NCBI GenBank assembly: GCA_029953675.1
Contig: JAMWBK010000006.1
Span: 1,736,001-1,800,000, forward strand
Length of the DNA: 64,000 bases
Source: Rhodosorus marinus CCMP1338
Lineage: Eukaryota > Plantae > Rhodophyta
Direction: 5' to 3'
Position numbers and translations under genes: made by a program. Within the stretch, counting starts at the first letter, position 1. The number at the start of each line of letters is the position of its first letter. Below the pieces are notes generated by a model. It was not told the origin of the DNA and made no database searches. It saw only the letters and a list, made by a program, of their open reading frames with translations. Below, one piece after another: positions 44,198 through 54,651 of this stretch.

Positions 44198-45854
44198 GGT
44201 GTTTTCTGCATTTTTACGGAGGATGTGCCTGGAGTAAGAGGTAGACCACGGAGGATTCTGTTCATGGCCAAGAAAGGGATTGACTTCTCCTGTCACGCAG
44301 TTTTGCTCTCTCTGTCTCAACACATAGTGTGGACCTCAGTTTATACCTGATTCCTCTGAGCTCGCTGGGCTAGGAGCTCTGTGAGTTGTAAGCAATAGTT
44401 GGGGCGGTTCACCCGAGGGCACGCGAGGAGAACCTGATGAGGATCTTCTTATCGTCAGGATGAGTGAACCAATTCAACCGCTCTGTAGAGGCGGAATTCT
44501 TCGACACCGAAGCCGTCCTACTCTTGCATTGGGCTCTACAAAAGAAAAAAAAATGTATCGACGAGAGACATCTGATTACCAAACCCCTAGCGAAAATAAC
44601 GCAAACAATGCTTTCTAAGACGCCGTTCACAGATAGCAGCACCGAGCCGAGAAGTTCCAGAATGCCAAAGGGTCACGAAATCAAACGCCGTCTAGAATCC
44701 GGCCCACGAAAAGTTCAACGAATTCGTCCTCCGACCAAAAGAGCTGCTGTGTTCGTCTAAACATCCGAGAACGCAGGTCGTTGCATACTCTGAGACCGAA
44801 GGTAAAGCTACGCAGAAAAACAAAACAAAAGTGCCTAAGCCAGAACAGTGCTCCAGAGACAGCAATTTTCCCAGCCCTTCACGTGAAAACTACCCAAGAC
44901 GGACACTCCACACCCCACCCTCCTCCCGCATTGCCCTTCACAATTCGAAACCCCAATATCCCCAATTCCGGCTTGCTGTGTCCCAACCTAAGGAGAAACT
45001 TTTTTGCCACCTCATGTACACTCTTTTATGGGACCAAGGACAAAATATATCAAAAATTTGAATATTAGCTGAGGAGTATATCTCTTTGAAATCTACAAAT
45101 TACAAGCCAAGCGCTAGATCATGATATTTGGAAATATTTGGATATACCGCTTGCGCGGTGTCAGCACTGTCCAAAAGAATTTGTTTTTAATTTCCGCGTT
45201 CGTCAGTACAATGTTAATCTTTTAATGGGACATCCGTCTTCTGAGCAAGCTCCTACATGTGTAAAATCCAACCAAATCCGAGCTCAAGCTCCGGGTTGGC
45301 GTCCACCACGAATACCAAATCCAAGTGGTATTCATGGTGTCTTGGTGTTCTTTAGCGCAACAGTGTGGTTGCCATTACATAAGGGAATTAGATGCGCTCC
45401 ATACGGGTGGGAGCTCGTATCCTGATGTTTTGAAACTGTGTGAAGAGGGGAGTAGAGTACGTCTCCACCAGCGTGGGCGGTGCGCTTCGACATCTCCGGG
45501 GAAAAGTTCTTCGAGCAACAACTTCACACTTGAAAGGTCCATACGCCTGTAGGAGAGGAAGTGCGTGAGTTGGATTGTGAAAAACCCGTGGTGGGGCGCA
45601 TCCTTCATCGTGGGCTTACCAGAGAAACGGACCAAATGCTCCTCTGAAATCGGAAGCTGGGTACCATATGTTTTACAGCTATGCTCTGGTGCATGCATTG
45701 CCTAAACAAGATGGATAAGTATCATTTTCTAATAGACATTTTAGGACGAAAAGACTCGAGATAGAACTGATTTAAGGACGCGCAATGTTCCCGAGGTTGG
45801 AAACCTTCACGGATGCAAAAAAAACAACAAAAAAGGTTGGGAAATGTGTTGCCT

Positions 45855-46240
45855 GAGAAAGCCATGTAATACGCAAGAGTATTGCCACCTGCTACTCGAG
45901 CACCATTCGGCGAACACTAGCTGCAACCCATGCGAAGAAAGTATTGGCAGTGGGTGAGGTGGAATTTTCGAACAATCTGTGGGTACTTTTGCAGAGTTCT
46001 CGGAGACCAGCCTCAGGTGAACGTGGATCCTGGATTGTTGAATCCAGGGAAGGACTGGAACCTGTGATTCATCTCCCACGGGGACTCAATTGCGCTGAAA
46101 CGCGCTTCGTACCCAGACAAGATGACCAGGCCTTCGTGACCCCCAGGACGATGGCTTCTTTATCCGGTGTACCCACGAAAACGATGATTGTGGCCTTCGT
46201 CATGTATGGCGCCAAGCTGATGTTCAGAAAGCTCTTTTTA
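45855..46240 (+). pseudogene. Internally deleted, frameshifted fragment of the neighbouring carotenoid cleavage dioxygenase
   Basis: ANTS/THAKKVLAVGE matches TANTSIVYHAKNVLALGE; it joins directly to QVNVDPGLL/EGLEPVIHLPRGLNCAETRFVPR/QDDGFFIRCTHEND/FVMYGAKLM, which matches KVNVRAGLL...GLEAVIHLPPGLNCGEMRFVPR...EDDGFLIGYAHEND...FVAYDAKTM. Confidence 0.85.
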
Positions 46241-47047: not shown

Positions 47048-48703
47048 ATGGCTGACTCTGTAGTTGATGGTGGTGCGGTGCCTGCACCTGGGATGTCTAT
47101 TGCTAATGCTCTGAACCATGCGTACATGAGAAGCATTGACTTTGTTTCCGGTACCCTGAACACTGCACTTGGCACTCTGGGAGGTGATAATCCGGATAAA
47201 AATATCTATTTGAAAGGGAGGTACGCACCGTTAACAAAACAATTTCATGAGATAGATTGCGAGCTCCTGGAAGGAGCGCTTCCGGAGTCGCTCAAGGGGG
47301 CGTACATGAGAAACGGGCCAAATGCTGCTTTAACACCGGAGGGCGGGTACCATCTGTTTGATGGAGATGGGATGGTGCATGCAGTTCGCTTCCGGGATGG
47401 GAAATTGTCATTCTCTAACAGATATGTGCGGACGAAAAGATTGGAGATGGAGCTCAGTCATGGACGACCCGTGTTCCTGAAGATCGGAGACTTTCATGGG
47501 GTGACAGGTCTTGGCAAGGTACTCCTAGCTCAAGCTTTGAGATACTTGAATATAGTGCCACCGCCTACTGGACTGTACCATACAGCGAACACAAGTATCG
47601 TATACCATGCGAAGAACGTACTAGCGCTTGGAGAGGGCGGAGCTCCGTACAATCTGCGAATGCTTTGCAATGGTATTGTTGAGACTCTGGGAGCAGTATC
47701 TACCAACATAGAAGGTTCCAAGTCCTTCACAGCGCATCCAAAGATCGACCCGGACAGTGATGAAATGGTGACTTTCGGTTACAACGTTGAAAACAAGCCG
47801 TACGTGAGAGTTGGGTTTGTGGATGCGGATGGTAACGCCGAGAAGACGATACTAGTTCATGGAGTTTCGCGGCCTGTGATGATCCACGACATGGCACTGA
47901 CGAAGAACTACGTATTCGTGTTCGACATGCCTTTGATTTTCGACCCGGCAGTGATGGTGAAGGAGAACAAACTGCCGTTTGCATTGCGTGAGGATATTCC
48001 AGGACGCTTTGGTTTGCTTAGAAGAGACGCCGTGGACGATAAGACGATGGAATGGTTCGAAGTACCTGGAGGCTTCTGGGTGTCCCACGAAGCTAATGCC
48101 TGGGAGGACGAAGAATCGAAGAAAGTTCACCTGGTTGCGATTAAGATTAGTGGATTTGACCTTGATAGCGTGTGGCAAGAGGAAGATAGGGAGAAACCTT
48201 ATCTAGCACACTGGAGCTTCGATCTCGAGAAGAAGGAGGTTACGCATCGGCGTCTTCTTTCAGACGAGGGTCAGGTTATGGAATTCCCTGTAATCAATCC
48301 GAGGTATAAAAGCAAAAAGGCCAAGTACGTGTGGGTTAACCTTGCCGAGCGGATGAATGATGACTACTACTTTGTGAGGATAGGGAAGGTAAACGTAAGA
48401 GCTGGCTTGCTGGACGCGGATGACGGATTGGAAGCGGTCATTCACCTTCCTCCGGGACTCAACTGTGGTGAAATGCGCTTCGTGCCCCGCCATGAAGATC
48501 CAAGCATGTGCGATGGCGAGGACGATGGGTTCTTGATCGGATACGCGCACGAAAATGATAATTCCGGTGCTTATTTTGTTGCGTATGACGCCAAAACAAT
48601 GTCTTCCAACATGCTGTGCAAATTCAGAATGCCAACGAGAATACCTTTCGGCTTTCATGGCTATCATATCAACGAGTCAGAATTTGTCAAGCAGCTCGCT
48701 TGA
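47048..48703 (+). CDS. Carotenoid cleavage dioxygenase (RPE65 family, CCD1-like), intronless
   Basis: GAYMRNGPN, YHLFDGDGMVH, four Fe-ligand His (FTAHPK, MIHDMA, VSHEAN, PFGFHG), GEMRFVPR...EDDGFLI. Confidence 0.94.
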   Translation: MADSVVDGGAVPAPGMSIANALNHAYMRSIDFVSGTLNTALGTLGGDNPDKNIYLKGRYAPLTKQFHEIDCELLEGALPESLKGAYMRNGPNAALTPEGGYHLFDGDGMVHAVRFRDGKLSFSNRYVRTKRLEMELSHGRPVFLKIGDFHGVTGLGKVLLAQALRYLNIVPPPTGLYHTANTSIVYHAKNVLALGEGGAPYNLRMLCNGIVETLGAVSTNIEGSKSFTAHPKIDPDSDEMVTFGYNVENKPYVRVGFVDADGNAEKTILVHGVSRPVMIHDMALTKNYVFVFDMPLIFDPAVMVKENKLPFALREDIPGRFGLLRRDAVDDKTMEWFEVPGGFWVSHEANAWEDEESKKVHLVAIKISGFDLDSVWQEEDREKPYLAHWSFDLEKKEVTHRRLLSDEGQVMEFPVINPRYKSKKAKYVWVNLAERMNDDYYFVRIGKVNVRAGLLDADDGLEAVIHLPPGLNCGEMRFVPRHEDPSMCDGEDDGFLIGYAHENDNSGAYFVAYDAKTMSSNMLCKFRMPTRIPFGFHGYHINESEFVKQLA

Positions 48704-49193: not shown

Positions 49194-52100
49194 CTACCAA
49201 TGAGTGTATTCATCCAGGAAACGTCCGAGTTTAAACTCTGGCTTTCTAGCGGCTCTGCGAATGAGGTACTTGCGAATCTCGTCGTAGAACAACTCGAACA
49301 GCGCGAATGGAATTCCTGGCAGCCAATGTACAAACCGGATTGGTGCAGTTCCTATGATCGTTTGGATGAACGGCACGTACGCGATGATCACCGCCAGCAG
49401 AGTTTCGAGGACTAGGCCAAAGTTGAGGACCCAGTTCCACATGCCTTGCTGGAAGATGGATAGTGTCCTTGTCTTCGTGATCAGTAGATCGCCCCACTGC
49501 ACAATGATGATTGCGACGAAGTAGGCGGTCTGTGCATGCCTCAGGGTCTGAGTTTGCTGCTCGCTGGTCCAGAGTTCGAAACATCCGGAATCTCCAATGT
49601 TGTCATTCTGTTCTCCGGTGTTGATTCCTGTGTAGTAAACAGAGCCTTCGTTCACGGAGCTGTCAAAGCAGCTCAAGTCGTTCTTCAGAAGCTCGTTGTT
49701 CACTTCACAGGTGAATGCCATGCATGATGGTTGCTGCGTCAGGAAGCCCACAATCTTGAACATATTATTGAACTGCTCGTTAACAGGAGTGCCTGGTACG
49801 CTCGCCAGAAGACTGCTTGACTCCACAGTCCCTGGCGTGCTTGGCAATTCATCAAACACCGCAGTCGTCTGTTGGATAAATCCAGTCGGAGGCTGGCTGC
49901 TGAAAAACTGGCTGAAGTCGCTTTCGTTGTTGAACCAAACCCTCATATTTGCAGCCTGGTTAAAGGAACTCTTCTGCGCAATAAGCCATCTCTGGTCCTC
50001 TTGTACGGACGTTGCGAAGAAACTGTTCACGTCCAGGTTGTTTAGAGTACTGGGGCTCAGGCCATAGTCGTTGAATACGATGAAGTACGCAAACAATCCC
50101 GCTAGGGCCTGGATGACTCCAATCTGGAAGTAGGCGAACGAAATTAGCTTCCTGTTCACCAGTCGGTCCTTTCCGGCGCGGCGAGGCTTCCTCTTCATGA
50201 TATCGTTCTCTGGCTTCTCATAGGCGAGGGAGATCGCTGGCACCACATCTGTTCCAAGATCAATCAGGAGAATCAAGAAGACAGACAGCGGGATTGGAAT
50301 GCTGATTAGAATGAACAACAGGAACGGGATGAGCTCGGGAATGTTGGATGACAGCGTGTAGGAGATTGATTTCTTCAGGTTGTCGAAGATAAGCCTGCCC
50401 TCCTCTACGGCATTCACGATTGATGCAAAGTTGTCGTCGAGCAGGATCATGTCCGCAGCTTCCTTGGAAACATCTGATCCTGCAATACCCATAGCAACTC
50501 CAATGTTCGCCTGCTTCAGAGCCGGAGAGTCGTTCACGCCATCTCCTGTCACCGCGACGATCTTTCCCAGCCTCTGACAGTTCTCCACGATGATCAGCTT
50601 CTGTTGAGGCGACGTCCTAGCAAACACGATCTGCTCTTTCGCAAGAATGCGATCCCAGTCCTCCTCGTCTAGATCCTTAATAGCCCATCCAGGTACTACT
50701 ACAGCTTTTGCCTCGCTATCGTTAACTTCATCAACACTACATCCACGCTCAATCGCAATGTCCTCGACCGTCTGATCCTTAATGATATTCACGGACTTCG
50801 CAATAGCTTTGGCAGTTGCTGGATGGTCGCCAGTAACCATGATGACCTGAATACCTGCTTCCTGGCAGGTCTCAACTGCGTATGGAACGGACTCTCTAGG
50901 TGGATCCAGCAGAGAAACCAGTCCAACGAAGCACAGCTCGCCCTCCATGATCTCATCGAGGAAGTTTTCGCGTTCCGAATCAAATTCGTAGTCGGGACCG
51001 AACTTCTCCGGCAACATTCGCTCAGCGAAGCCAAGAACTCGTTCTCCATTTGACATCAAAACTCTCAGGTGGGCATCGATGGTTTCCTTGTCCTCAGCGT
51101 TCATGGGTACCACTCCTTCAGACTTGAGCATACGCGTGCATCGGCTAATTACTCGCTCTGGAGCACCCTTCATGAGCACACGGAACAAGCCGGACTCCTC
51201 GTCCTTGTTTACGGTCACCATGAACTTGTTCGCAGAGTTGAACGGAACACCAGACACCTGCGGGTTGTTTCTTCTGATGGGCATAACCGGTTCCAACTTC
51301 TCAGCAAACTTGAGAATACCAGCTTCTGAGGCGTCTCCGTTCACCTTTCTCTCGTCTATTGGTAGCTCAGGGTTCATTTCCATGTCAGCAGCATCGAAAA
51401 CAGCTTTGGCACAATTTGTGGCACCGTAGAAGAGCGTCTTGAAGGCAACGTTCTCAGTGTCAATATCAGATTCCGTTGTGCTTGTCTTCGCCGTATGCAT
51501 CTCCCCGTCATAAACCAGATGAAGAACCGTCATTCTGTTCTGAGTCAACGTTCCAGTTTTATCCGAGCAGATTGTAGTCGTCGAGCCCAACGTCTCCACG
51601 GACTCCAACTTCTTTACCAGTACATTTCGCTTCGCCATTCTCTTCGCCGTCAGGGTAAGTGACACCGTGACAGTCGCCAGCAGGCCTTCAGGAACGTTTG
51701 CAACAATGATTCCAATCGATCGCACAATGTTCTGGATGATATCAGATGACCGGAACAGTCCAAACACGAAGAATATTACTCCCAAAGAAATAGCTACCAC
51801 TGAGATCAGAATTACGAACGAATGGATTTCGATTTGCAAAGTCGTCTGCGAGTTTCCTGAGGAGGCGGCCAGACCGGCAATCCTTCCAAAGACAGTTTCG
51901 TCTCCCGTATTTACAACAATACCTTTCGCCGTTCCCTCGACAGCGAGTGTTCCGAAAAACGCCAGGTTCTTCGTCTCGAGGGGATTTGCATCGGTGCATT
52001 CAACCGTTCGAGCGAGAGGCTCCGACTCGCCAGTCAAGGAAGCCATTTCCACCTTCAGTTTACTGTTCTCAATGATTCGAATATCAGCTGGAATCTTGTC

Positions 52101-52721
52101 TCCAAGCTTAACCTCAACAACATCTCCAACCACCAACGACGATGCTTCAATTTCCACAACGTTCCCATCTCTGATGGCCAGCGCCTGTGGTGGAAGGAAA
52201 TTCTTGAACTTCTCAAGTGTCTTTTCTGAAGAGTGCTCCTGGAAGAAGGTGAACAGGGCTGTGAAGATGACGACGAAGTACAGCACGATTCCAAGGTACA
52301 AGTTGTCCGTATTCTCCGGTGTCAGAGCATATCCAATAAATGAAAGAATCGCCGCCACTTGCAAAATGATGGCGAAGAAGTTGGTGAACTGGAGCAGCAG
52401 CTTGATATACCACGGCGTGACTTTAGGTGGAGAGAGCTGGTTTGGGCCATCCTTCTCCAACCTCATCTTAGCCTCATCAGAGCTCAGTCCAGTTTCCACG
52501 TCTGTGCCAATTCTTTCGCAGAGCTCCTCAACCGTAACTTCATGCTGCCACATCTCCACCTCCTTCTTCAAGTTATCCTGTTCGTCATCCTGTCCCTTCT
52601 TCTTCTTCCGCTCTCTCCGACTCTTTCGATCCAGTTTTTCCTCAATCCGAGCCGAGGTCTCAGAGAAAGTGCGAACGATCTCCAGGTCAATAGCATCCTG
52701 CTGATTCTTGTCCGGATGCAT
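49194..52721 (-). CDS. ATP1A: P2C-type ATPase, Na+/K+-ATPase alpha subunit, intronless, with enlarged M7-M8 loop
   Basis: TGES, IVANVPEGLL, CSDKTGTLTQNRMTV, GDASE, PFNSANK, KGAPE, MVTGDH, FARTSPQQKLIIVE, TGDGVNDSPALK, SNIPEL, IDLGTD, QWGDLLITKTR, C-terminal aromatic end EYTHW. Confidence 0.95.
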   Translation of the reverse strand: MHPDKNQQDAIDLEIVRTFSETSARIEEKLDRKSRRERKKKKGQDDEQDNLKKEVEMWQHEVTVEELCERIGTDVETGLSSDEAKMRLEKDGPNQLSPPKVTPWYIKLLLQFTNFFAIILQVAAILSFIGYALTPENTDNLYLGIVLYFVVIFTALFTFFQEHSSEKTLEKFKNFLPPQALAIRDGNVVEIEASSLVVGDVVEVKLGDKIPADIRIIENSKLKVEMASLTGESEPLARTVECTDANPLETKNLAFFGTLAVEGTAKGIVVNTGDETVFGRIAGLAASSGNSQTTLQIEIHSFVILISVVAISLGVIFFVFGLFRSSDIIQNIVRSIGIIVANVPEGLLATVTVSLTLTAKRMAKRNVLVKKLESVETLGSTTTICSDKTGTLTQNRMTVLHLVYDGEMHTAKTSTTESDIDTENVAFKTLFYGATNCAKAVFDAADMEMNPELPIDERKVNGDASEAGILKFAEKLEPVMPIRRNNPQVSGVPFNSANKFMVTVNKDEESGLFRVLMKGAPERVISRCTRMLKSEGVVPMNAEDKETIDAHLRVLMSNGERVLGFAERMLPEKFGPDYEFDSERENFLDEIMEGELCFVGLVSLLDPPRESVPYAVETCQEAGIQVIMVTGDHPATAKAIAKSVNIIKDQTVEDIAIERGCSVDEVNDSEAKAVVVPGWAIKDLDEEDWDRILAKEQIVFARTSPQQKLIIVENCQRLGKIVAVTGDGVNDSPALKQANIGVAMGIAGSDVSKEAADMILLDDNFASIVNAVEEGRLIFDNLKKSISYTLSSNIPELIPFLLFILISIPIPLSVFLILLIDLGTDVVPAISLAYEKPENDIMKRKPRRAGKDRLVNRKLISFAYFQIGVIQALAGLFAYFIVFNDYGLSPSTLNNLDVNSFFATSVQEDQRWLIAQKSSFNQAANMRVWFNNESDFSQFFSSQPPTGFIQQTTAVFDELPSTPGTVESSSLLASVPGTPVNEQFNNMFKIVGFLTQQPSCMAFTCEVNNELLKNDLSCFDSSVNEGSVYYTGINTGEQNDNIGDSGCFELWTSEQQTQTLRHAQTAYFVAIIIVQWGDLLITKTRTLSIFQQGMWNWVLNFGLVLETLLAVIIAYVPFIQTIIGTAPIRFVHWLPGIPFALFELFYDEIRKYLIRRAARKPEFKLGRFLDEYTHW

Positions 52722-54312
52722 GCACTTCCAAAATTATAAAGAAATAAGAAACTTCAAACCCGCGAACCACAACCACTTACAATCGATCCAAATAATCCAA
52801 GTAGCCCCAAATCCAAAACACACTCACAAAAACTCAATCGCGTATACTTAGTTCAATATAGTGCTGCCATCGAAGTCCAACCCAACCATCACTAGTTTTA
52901 TACTCATCACCAGTAACCCCACTGAACCTTCAGCTTCGGTCAGAGCAAGTTCGATCTAGGCTGAGCAGCAATGTTCGTCATAAGCAGAAATGTCCCTAAG
53001 CAAAAAAATACGCTTCAAAATATTCTGTTATACAATTCTCTCAATCCAATCATGATCCCGAATGGATTTGATGCGCCGCGGATTGTTCCTTTCCAGAAAT
53101 CCATTGGAAGCATTGACAAACTTGGCTTACTATTATTGGATAAAACAGATATCTCCTGATATCAGGAAAAAATGGATTTTCATGATTAAGAGAAAAGCAA
53201 GTCTATATTTGGCCAAATACCCGTTCGTTAAATTCATTACAGGAAGTTTTGGACTGCCAAAGTTTCAAAAAAATTACCTCATTTGTATTAAATTCAATGT
53301 ACACGTATTTTTATTCCTGAGCAGGAACCCGCAAACTTGAGGGGGGGTGAGAAATCCAACAACTCCATCTAAAAAGGCTAATTATTTAGAAATTAATGGC
53401 TATTTTCAAAATATAGGAAAATATAACCCCTATCGATGTTTATTGTATTTTATTCAATTGTACAATCTTTTAGATTATAAATTAAAATTGTTAATAATTA
53501 AGAGAGATGCAAATTACTCGAATATGAAGAAAATTAGTACAATCTAAAAAACATGCTCAAATAATTATGGATAATTGGTTACTTGTCGAGGTGGAATTTC
53601 TCTTCAATACAGGAGTTGATGAAATTCTGTCAGCTGAATGGCTGATAGCAAATATTGAATGTATTTCATTTTAAGAATCCGTTTGACAATCCATCTAGAA
53701 TCCATTTGGATTTCATCGTTGTCAGCTCGCTCACGAACGCTCAACGCACGGAAGCGATCACCTGGATCCTCTTGGGTGTCAGATGCTGAGTAGACTGGGA
53801 GTAGAGCGACATCGGCATGATTAACTAGTGACGTGCTTATCGTTTTCTCTGGAGCCTTATTGCGTGTCGAAATGTTTAAATGCAATTCTGAAATAGGATC
53901 ACGTCGTCAGCCTGTGATACATGAAACATGGTGGGAAAGCGCATTCCCTTCTCTGTCTACCTCTGTAGAAGCGCACAGCTAGTAGCAGCTGGCGGGCCTG
54001 ACGGATAGGCCTTTGCTCTTCTTTGACATCTCGCAGATGTGGTGACAGTTGGCTCTGGACCATTGGTCTGGGATGTGCAACCATTGCGTTTGGAATTGAA
54101 TTCATGTCCAGGGACCGAGCCCCGGAATGGCTTGTTATGGTCTGCATGTGCGTTCTTTGAAGTTTCCAGAATATTCTTCGAGTTTCTATGCCTCTATGTG
54201 AGACTTGCCGTGATCGTTCTCGCTGCTTATATCAGTGGTCGTTAATCAGAGCTTTGTTGAGATCGTGGCATGGTACAGATCAAAAGTATAGTTGTTTAGG
54301 ATAGGTAGAAGA

Positions 54313-54651
54313 ATGAAGTTGTCACGGCCAAGGATAAGTTCTCCAATTCGAAGGAATGATGAAGGAAGGGTAGCTCTTTTCGGACTCACTGGCATGGAGT
54401 GGCTCAAGGTATGTTGTTTTTCACATGGATATTCTGTTTCGTTGGATGGGCAAACACGTGACGTGCGGCTAACGATGATATGTCTAAATCGCTCTCCCTC
54501 TTTTCCGCAGAGCATTGTCGCGCTGCTGCTTCTTTACGTCGTGCTAGCCGGATTTTTCACTGGAATGCTCTTTGCGGGTACTGGCATTAGGTCCGCTGGC
54601 GGAGTATTTGAGCGCCCTGGTACGGAATTCCCTTCGCAGATTCAGACCTGA
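54313..54651 (+). CDS. Miniature Na,K-ATPase beta-subunit-like peptide (~78 aa; exons 54313-54408 and 54511-54651); an additional 5' exon cannot be excluded
   Basis: GT-AG intron 54409-54510 with GCTAAC branch point and pyrimidine tract; spliced product MKLSRPRISSPIRRNDEGRVALFGLTGMEWLKSIVALLLLYVVLAGFFTGMLFAGTGIRSAGGVFERPGTEFPSQIQT*; gapless match to the beta-subunit [11 protein letters not shown]...[10 protein letters not shown] segment (human sequence recalled from memory). Confidence 0.7.
   Translation: MKLSRPRISSPIRRNDEGRVALFGLTGMEWLKVCCFSHGYSVSLDGQTRDVRLTMICLNRSPSFPQSIVALLLLYVVLAGFFTGMLFAGTGIRSAGGVFERPGTEFPSQIQT

Follow-up and report, generated by a model that had tools for sequence, protein, structure and literature searches.

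The M7-M8 loop of a red-algal Na+/K+-ATPase alpha subunit carries a net gain of about 135 amino acids (aa), and from sequence comparison and structure prediction we lean towards regarding this segment as a lineage-restricted extracellular domain that caps the loop and stands in cis for the ectodomain of the beta subunit. The gene is found in a 64,000-nt stretch of nuclear DNA from the stylonematophycean red alga Rhodosorus marinus CCMP1338 (contig JAMWBK010000006.1, assembly GCA_029953675.1). This whole stretch is called the window and all coordinates given below are window positions. In animal pumps, beta assembles at the M7-M8 loop and thereby makes the M7-M8 pair stable and exit from the endoplasmic reticulum (ER) possible; it is unsettled why Na+/K+- and H+/K+-ATPases need beta while close relatives do not. 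We know of no canonical beta in the Rhodosorus lineage. An alpha subunit with its own folded cap would provide a natural test of what the ectodomain contributes to ER exit, to the stability of the M7-M8 hairpin and to K+ gating, and plants or yeast could produce such a pump with no need for a partner. The value of this locus as a test case is increased by a neighbouring gene of 78 codons, which may encode a beta-like membrane helix.

Long M7-M8 loops in other algal pumps, which an earlier note on this DNA had mentioned, are in print, and so are the insert class and the idea of a beta equivalent. A conserved extracellular M7-M8 insert present in some algal Na+/K+-ATPases was suggested to be the equivalent of animal beta, with no experimental support (PMC7911474); the work cited there for this idea is Pedersen 2012 (PMC3355532), in the available text of which the statement was not found. 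The P2C ATPases considered in PMC7911474, from chlorophytes and red algae, resemble the Rhodosorus protein in the site of the insert, its approximate size (100-150 aa) and the proposed role, but the Rhodosorus insert is of a four-cysteine type detectably related to only ~15 protein clusters. New here are the definition of this rare four-cysteine family, a predicted fold without known counterpart, the refutation of homology to beta and the documentation of a neighbour resembling the beta membrane anchor. As the insert class has already been noted in algal pumps, most of the value lies in follow-up experiments. A long hydrophilic M7-M8 insert has reportedly also been described, by Shono et al. 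in 2001, in the Na+-ATPase HANA of Heterosigma akashiwo.

An alpha subunit with an extended M7-M8 loop

The gene and its loop are located as follows:

49194..52721, minus strand: Na+/K+-ATPase alpha-type (P2C) P-type ATPase gene; uninterrupted open reading frame of 1175 aa in a single exon, with Pfam and PDB matches
49572..50033, minus strand: content of the M7-M8 exoplasmic loop between PSTLNNL and WTSEQQ, aa 897-1050; net gain of ~135 aa relative to animal alpha

The deposited annotation of this contig has the same gene, with one exon and an identical product of 1175 aa. The Pfam domains Cation_ATPase_N, E1-E2_ATPase, Cation_ATPase, Hydrolase and Cation_ATPase_C each score above their cut-off, and the best PDB matches (phmmer) are Na,K-ATPase alpha chains with ~1000 bits, compared to ~900 bits for H+/K+-ATPases and at most 380 bits for SERCA, SPCA and bacterial Ca-ATPases. 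Judged by sequence, the protein is nearer to Na,K- and H,K-ATPase alpha chains than to the other P2 subfamilies and is placed in P2C. The catalytic motifs, visible both in the protein and in its alignment, are CSDKTGTLT (DKTGT), LTGESEP (TGES) and VTGDGVNDSPAL (TGDGVND). The motifs of the cation sites are also kept: VPEGLL in M4, YTLSSNIPE in M5, IDLGTDVVPAISLAYE in M6 and VQWGDL in M8. VPEGLL, YTLSSNIPE, IDLGTDVVPA and VQWGDL align with animal alpha, the assignment of single residues to cation sites coming from established structures. The protein is a functional-looking Na+/K+-ATPase alpha subunit for which Na+/K+ exchange is predicted.

The likeness to animal Na,K-ATPase alpha extends over the full length of the protein, all Pfam domains included, except for the insert, and comprises a Lys-rich N-terminus and a well-conserved M7. 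The M7-M8 loop is where the two differ. PSTLNNL occupies aa 890-896 and WTSEQQ aa 1051-1056, and they enclose 154 aa, which correspond precisely to 49572..50033. When the protein is aligned by phmmer with human alpha-3 (8d3u_A), the alignment splits in two, residues 31-899 matching chain positions 7-879 and residues 1046-1156 matching positions 891-1001; this leaves 19 aa for the same interval in the animal protein and gives a net insertion of ~135 aa. The earlier note had given about 19 aa for the animal loop, a figure that human alpha-3 bears out. Both ends of the animal loop are kept in the alga (..EDQRWLIAQ.. and ..DSGCFELWTSEQQT..) and the new sequence lies between them.

In animal alpha, the SYGQ motif of this loop is the docking site of the beta ectodomain. 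The algal protein has SGCFEL in its place, within DSGCFELWT (aa 1044-1052), and the alignment to human alpha-3 upholds the proposal of the earlier note that the insert sits at the beta-docking loop with SYGQ replaced. In sequence, the insert thus lies exactly at the site of the SYGQ motif with which animal alpha meets the beta ectodomain, and the docking motif is lost. Going by P2C topology, the insert would be exposed on the exoplasmic side. The C-terminus of the algal alpha (49197..49211) reads ..DEYTHW, that of its relatives ..TYW and that of animal pumps ..ETYY, in which the terminal tyrosines tune Na+ affinity.

The insert is coding, real sequence and results neither from an intron nor from chance or annotation, because its frame is open, its base composition agrees with the rest of the gene, no intron is annotated in the deposited call and a homologous insert is present in a transcript product of Bangiopsis sp. 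CCMP1999 (MMETSP/EukProt; P0019, 1195 aa). Read in the two remaining frames, the segment is broken by 7 and 8 stops. At third codon positions, the GC content (GC3) is 0.61 in the insert and 0.60 elsewhere in the gene, compared to a GC content of 0.45 in a true intron close by. The R. marinus genome averages ~3 introns per gene and its annotation was trained on RNA-seq (PMC10250338). An in-frame intron that escaped recognition, or an artefact of assembly or annotation, could be invoked on the basis of that average, but it deserves practically no credence given the open frame, the GC3, the single-exon call and the conservation of the protein sequence, with indel lengths divisible by three, across 14 sequences including transcript-derived ones. 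The earlier note had itself raised the prospect that the segment might be spliced out, or else be disordered and unconserved; neither fits the data presented here and in the next section.

The four-cysteine insert family and its predicted fold

To delimit the family, a profile of the loop was run with HMMER exhaustively against 1.84 billion representative proteins (E <= 0.001). Only 15 representatives matched, one of them being the protein encoded in the window; the three shortest matches (107-156 aa) look like fragments. An alignment over the loop was possible for thirteen of the 15; apart from the cluster-mates of P0029, the thirteenth too is represented in the alignment (A4), which comprises 14 loops: 12 profile matches together with P0002 and P0004 from a first homologue search. 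An earlier word-index homologue search with loop alignment had returned 2 proteins only; it was uninformative and is superseded by the profile search. Every aligned loop is flanked by M7 and M8 sequence of P2C ATPases. The parts of the insert, with the confidence of an AlphaFold2 (AF2) model given as predicted local distance difference test (pLDDT), are:

49851..50009, minus strand: conserved N-terminal half of the insert, aa 905-957, from the 14-sequence alignment; pLDDT 88-94 for loop residues 30-70
49779..49850, minus strand: Pro/Ser/Thr-rich linker, aa 958-981, gapped and of variable length among homologues; pLDDT 62-80
49572..49778, minus strand: four-cysteine module, aa 982-1050, the best-conserved part of the insert; cysteines invariant in 14 of 14 loops, pLDDT 90-95
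49920..49928, minus strand: NES sequon, aa 932-934, the sole sequon of the loop; not conserved

Two motifs, WF..(x)F..FF and PGF..Q..F, lie in the N-terminal half, as does the invariant W914 of 'QRW', the counterpart of 'DRW' in animals. Identity to homologues falls to 8-35% in the linker. The four-cysteine module consists of a helix (QFNNMFKIVGFL), a P.C..F(S/T)C hairpin and ND..CF, followed by GCFELW in place of the animal SYGQQW. Its cysteines, at positions 1000, 1005, 1018 and 1047, are the four announced in the earlier note; each of the 14 aligned loops has exactly four, all in invariant columns. W914 and several other positions, including aromatic residues, are likewise invariant. The NES sequon named in the same note is present, but carries less weight than was implied there, as 4 of the 14 loops have no sequon at all and the remaining loops have theirs at differing positions.

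Compared with full-length relatives, the insert reaches 27-39% identity and the catalytic core 48-70%. In the very divergent protein P0033 the core is only 32% identical and the insert still shows 33% identity; the domain is therefore old within its clade and under constraint. By these alignments, an M7-M8 insert exceeding 100 aa (154 aa vs 19 aa in animals) is conserved within a lineage, in 14 sequences. P0033 (L008 1251..4973) is a divergent paralogue or orthologue in which TGDGVND is changed to VGDGGND and the four-cysteine insert is retained; its pump chemistry may be altered, or it may have ceased to pump.

Other P2C ATPases (P0006, P0007, P0021 and P0024) carry a loop of ~200 aa at the same M7-M8 site, ending in GAFYWWNG. 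The loop of P0006 contains eight cysteines, and the eight-cysteine insert of P0006, P0007 and P0021 does not align with the four-cysteine type; it looks like an independent acquisition. The presence of an unrelated insert at one and the same site suggests that the M7-M8 site has gained ecto-domains more than once.

When the loop alone was modelled with AF2 on the 14 insert-bearing sequences, a mixed alpha+beta fold was predicted with a mean pLDDT of 81.9 and a predicted template-modelling score (pTM) of 0.78, only the linker falling below ~70. The model contains five strands, a 14-residue helix and short helices, and the stalk segments WLIAQ and CFELW both form strands in it. The four cysteines probably form two disulfides that brace the domain. 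The earlier note had proposed a comparison of such a model with the beta ectodomain; a Foldseek search of 350,542 PDB chains gave no fold similarity (best E 4.3, TM 0.14), with no beta-subunit chain listed, and a search of BFVD gave no match. The insert is thus predicted to adopt a confident compact fold without counterpart among solved or viral structures. At the sequence level, the insert had no PDB match by phmmer and no beta match by phmmer or by hmmscan against Pfam at E up to 10, its sole Pfam match being a sub-threshold domain of unknown function (DUF).

The beta ectodomain has six cysteines and an Ig-like sandwich of ~240 aa. Neither a match to PF00287 or to a solved beta chain nor an Ig-like sandwich with three disulfides was found for the insert, which has four cysteines and a predicted alpha+beta fold instead. 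That a beta ectodomain, or a fragment of one, was fused into alpha would accord with the adjacent gene for a beta-like protein lacking an ectodomain and with the 'high similarity' to animal beta ascribed to algal inserts (PMC7911474). This similarity was not reproduced for the Rhodosorus insert with phmmer, with hmmscan at E up to 10 or with Foldseek against the PDB, and a fusion is very improbable: the sequence searches recovered no beta and the structural search with a confidently predicted model listed zero beta chains. HMMER and Foldseek thus refute a common origin of the insert and the beta ectodomain. By sequence and predicted fold, the insert is an analogue and not a homologue of the beta ectodomain, whose docking place it occupies, and any lid provided in cis would be no transplanted beta domain.

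A proposed stand-in for the beta ectodomain and its alternatives

If the insert does act as a cap, its mode of action could be envisioned as follows. Both halves of the ancestral loop (..QRW.. and ..DS....WT.EQ..) would remain as a stalk, the domain growing from the tip of the M7-M8 hairpin. Firstly, the domain would fold in the ER lumen, probably braced by two disulfides. Secondly, it would cap and rigidify the M7-M8 loop. Thirdly, it would carry out in cis the structural and quality-control job that the beta ectodomain does in trans, and would possibly tune the extracellular ion gate. The membrane-anchor part of beta may come from the adjacent 78-aa beta-like gene, a link that is weaker than the rest of the scheme.

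The main rival is that the extracellular domain has a role unrelated to beta, at the only exoplasmic loop of alpha tolerant of insertions: a tether to wall or mucilage, sensing of redox state, pH or ions, or binding of another partner. Such a role would be compatible with a predicted fold that is unlike beta and has no counterpart in solved or viral structures, with a catalytic core far better conserved than the insert, and with the non-homologous eight-cysteine insert, which fits a site that is merely permissive. We consider it unlikely, although to be taken seriously. The site is exactly that of the beta-docking motif and the motif is lost; the part nearest to the stalk, GCFELW with the invariant C1047, is the most conserved, which speaks for a structural function within the loop; and non-animal P2C ATPases have no canonical beta and must nevertheless stabilise the M7-M8 hairpin (PMC7911474). 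The loop might also be a tolerated, largely neutral surface expansion without specific function, as its variable low-complexity linker, its non-conserved sequon and an identity below that of the catalytic core could suggest. Four invariant cysteines and several invariant aromatic residues across 14 lineages, with cores down to 32% identity, together with a compact fold predicted with confidence, make neutrality improbable.

Several observations weigh against a cap that replaces the beta ectodomain. Firstly, the insert is unlike the beta ectodomain by HMMER and by Foldseek, so that the argument for the cap comes from its position. Secondly, the structural model has its limits: the loop alignment given to AF2 is shallow (14 sequences), and in an AF2 model of M5-M10 built on 19 mostly insert-less rows the N-terminal half of the insert is of low confidence, the four-cysteine half reaching a pLDDT of 77-89. 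Thirdly, no counterpart of the 78-aa gene was found by tblastn and motif scans beside alpha in the loci of seven insert-bearing relatives (L001-L003 and L005-L008, 4-20 kb each), so that the co-occurrence envisaged in the earlier note was not seen by these scans, which have little power for a split gene of 78 aa. In favour of the cap, when alpha genes of the red alga Pyropia are expressed on their own in Chlamydomonas and in rice, Na+ efflux and salt tolerance are reported to improve (PMC12066774), which by analogy would fit an alpha subunit that is largely self-sufficient.

The 78-aa neighbour gene and the surrounding region

The neighbour, NDN08_000784, is an annotated gene of 78 aa that lies 1.6 kb upstream of alpha, is divergent from it and contains a GT..AG intron (gene call L004 8071..8409):

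54313..54408, plus strand: exon 1, with a basic N-terminus and the juxtamembrane motif LFGLTGMEWLK
54511..54651, plus strand: exon 2, with the membrane helix SIVALLLLYVVLAGFFTGMLFAG and a 22-aa tail followed by a stop; no ectodomain

The earlier note had described an ectodomain-less mini-beta next to alpha. The existence of a gene without ectodomain holds, and its match to beta is specific but below threshold. The only Pfam match of the spliced product is to PF00287, residues 21-53 aligning with profile positions 22-54 (E 0.032, 13.8 bits compared to a cut-off of 23.3). No Pfam match was obtained with the unspliced neighbouring open reading frames, the beta-like match appearing only after removal of the GT..AG intron. 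Among seven PDB matches, Artemia beta2 ranks first (E 0.0035), and beta chains in the same register account for four. The ungapped BLOSUM62 score against the Artemia segment is 80; shuffles that kept the composition of each segment scored 24 +/- 4.8 and none of 3000 reached 80. In the six frames of the window, the motifs G.[TS]G..W and LAG[FILVM]F.G occur once each, both in this gene.

The 78-aa protein resembles beta in its N-terminal juxtamembrane and helical parts (G.TG..W.K ... Y..LAGFF.GML) and differs from it in scoring below the Pfam cut-off and in having a 22-aa tail in place of a glycosylated ectodomain of ~240 aa. Homology to the N-terminus and membrane anchor of beta is likely, on these sequence matches, but unproven; if true, a beta-like protein would exist outside animals. 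A search of the protein collection matched only the 78-aa protein itself, this search being insensitive for a split gene of 78 aa. Transcriptome pipelines usually drop such short products. A single metagenome match (L009) was rejected as spurious, since it lies antisense within a bacterial glycosyltransferase-like open reading frame; that scan, too, was insensitive for so short a split gene.

A cap in cis and a beta-like anchor next door could be parts of one arrangement. The 78-aa protein, as a true homologue of the beta N-terminus and helix, would pair with M7/M10 in trans, the non-homologous four-cysteine domain would replace the ectodomain in cis, and both genes would share the 1.6-kb divergent promoter region. 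We put forward this split beta tentatively, as a possible arrangement that is open to doubt. If it is true, the membrane anchor of beta predates animals (or was transferred), and the ectodomain would be a replaceable module that different lineages gained independently and in different ways.

The 1.6 kb between the start codons of the two genes (52722..54300) are AT-rich (GC ~0.42), contain no convincing open reading frame and presumably act as a shared bidirectional promoter region. On the other side of alpha, an intact gene of the carotenoid-cleavage oxygenase (RPE65) family at 47048..48703 is preceded, just upstream, by a degraded second copy at 45446..46222 on the plus strand. The degraded copy matches aa 28-206 of the intact protein with 36% identity and aa 454-518 with 42% identity, the middle part being missing, and is probably a pseudogene derived from a tandem duplication.

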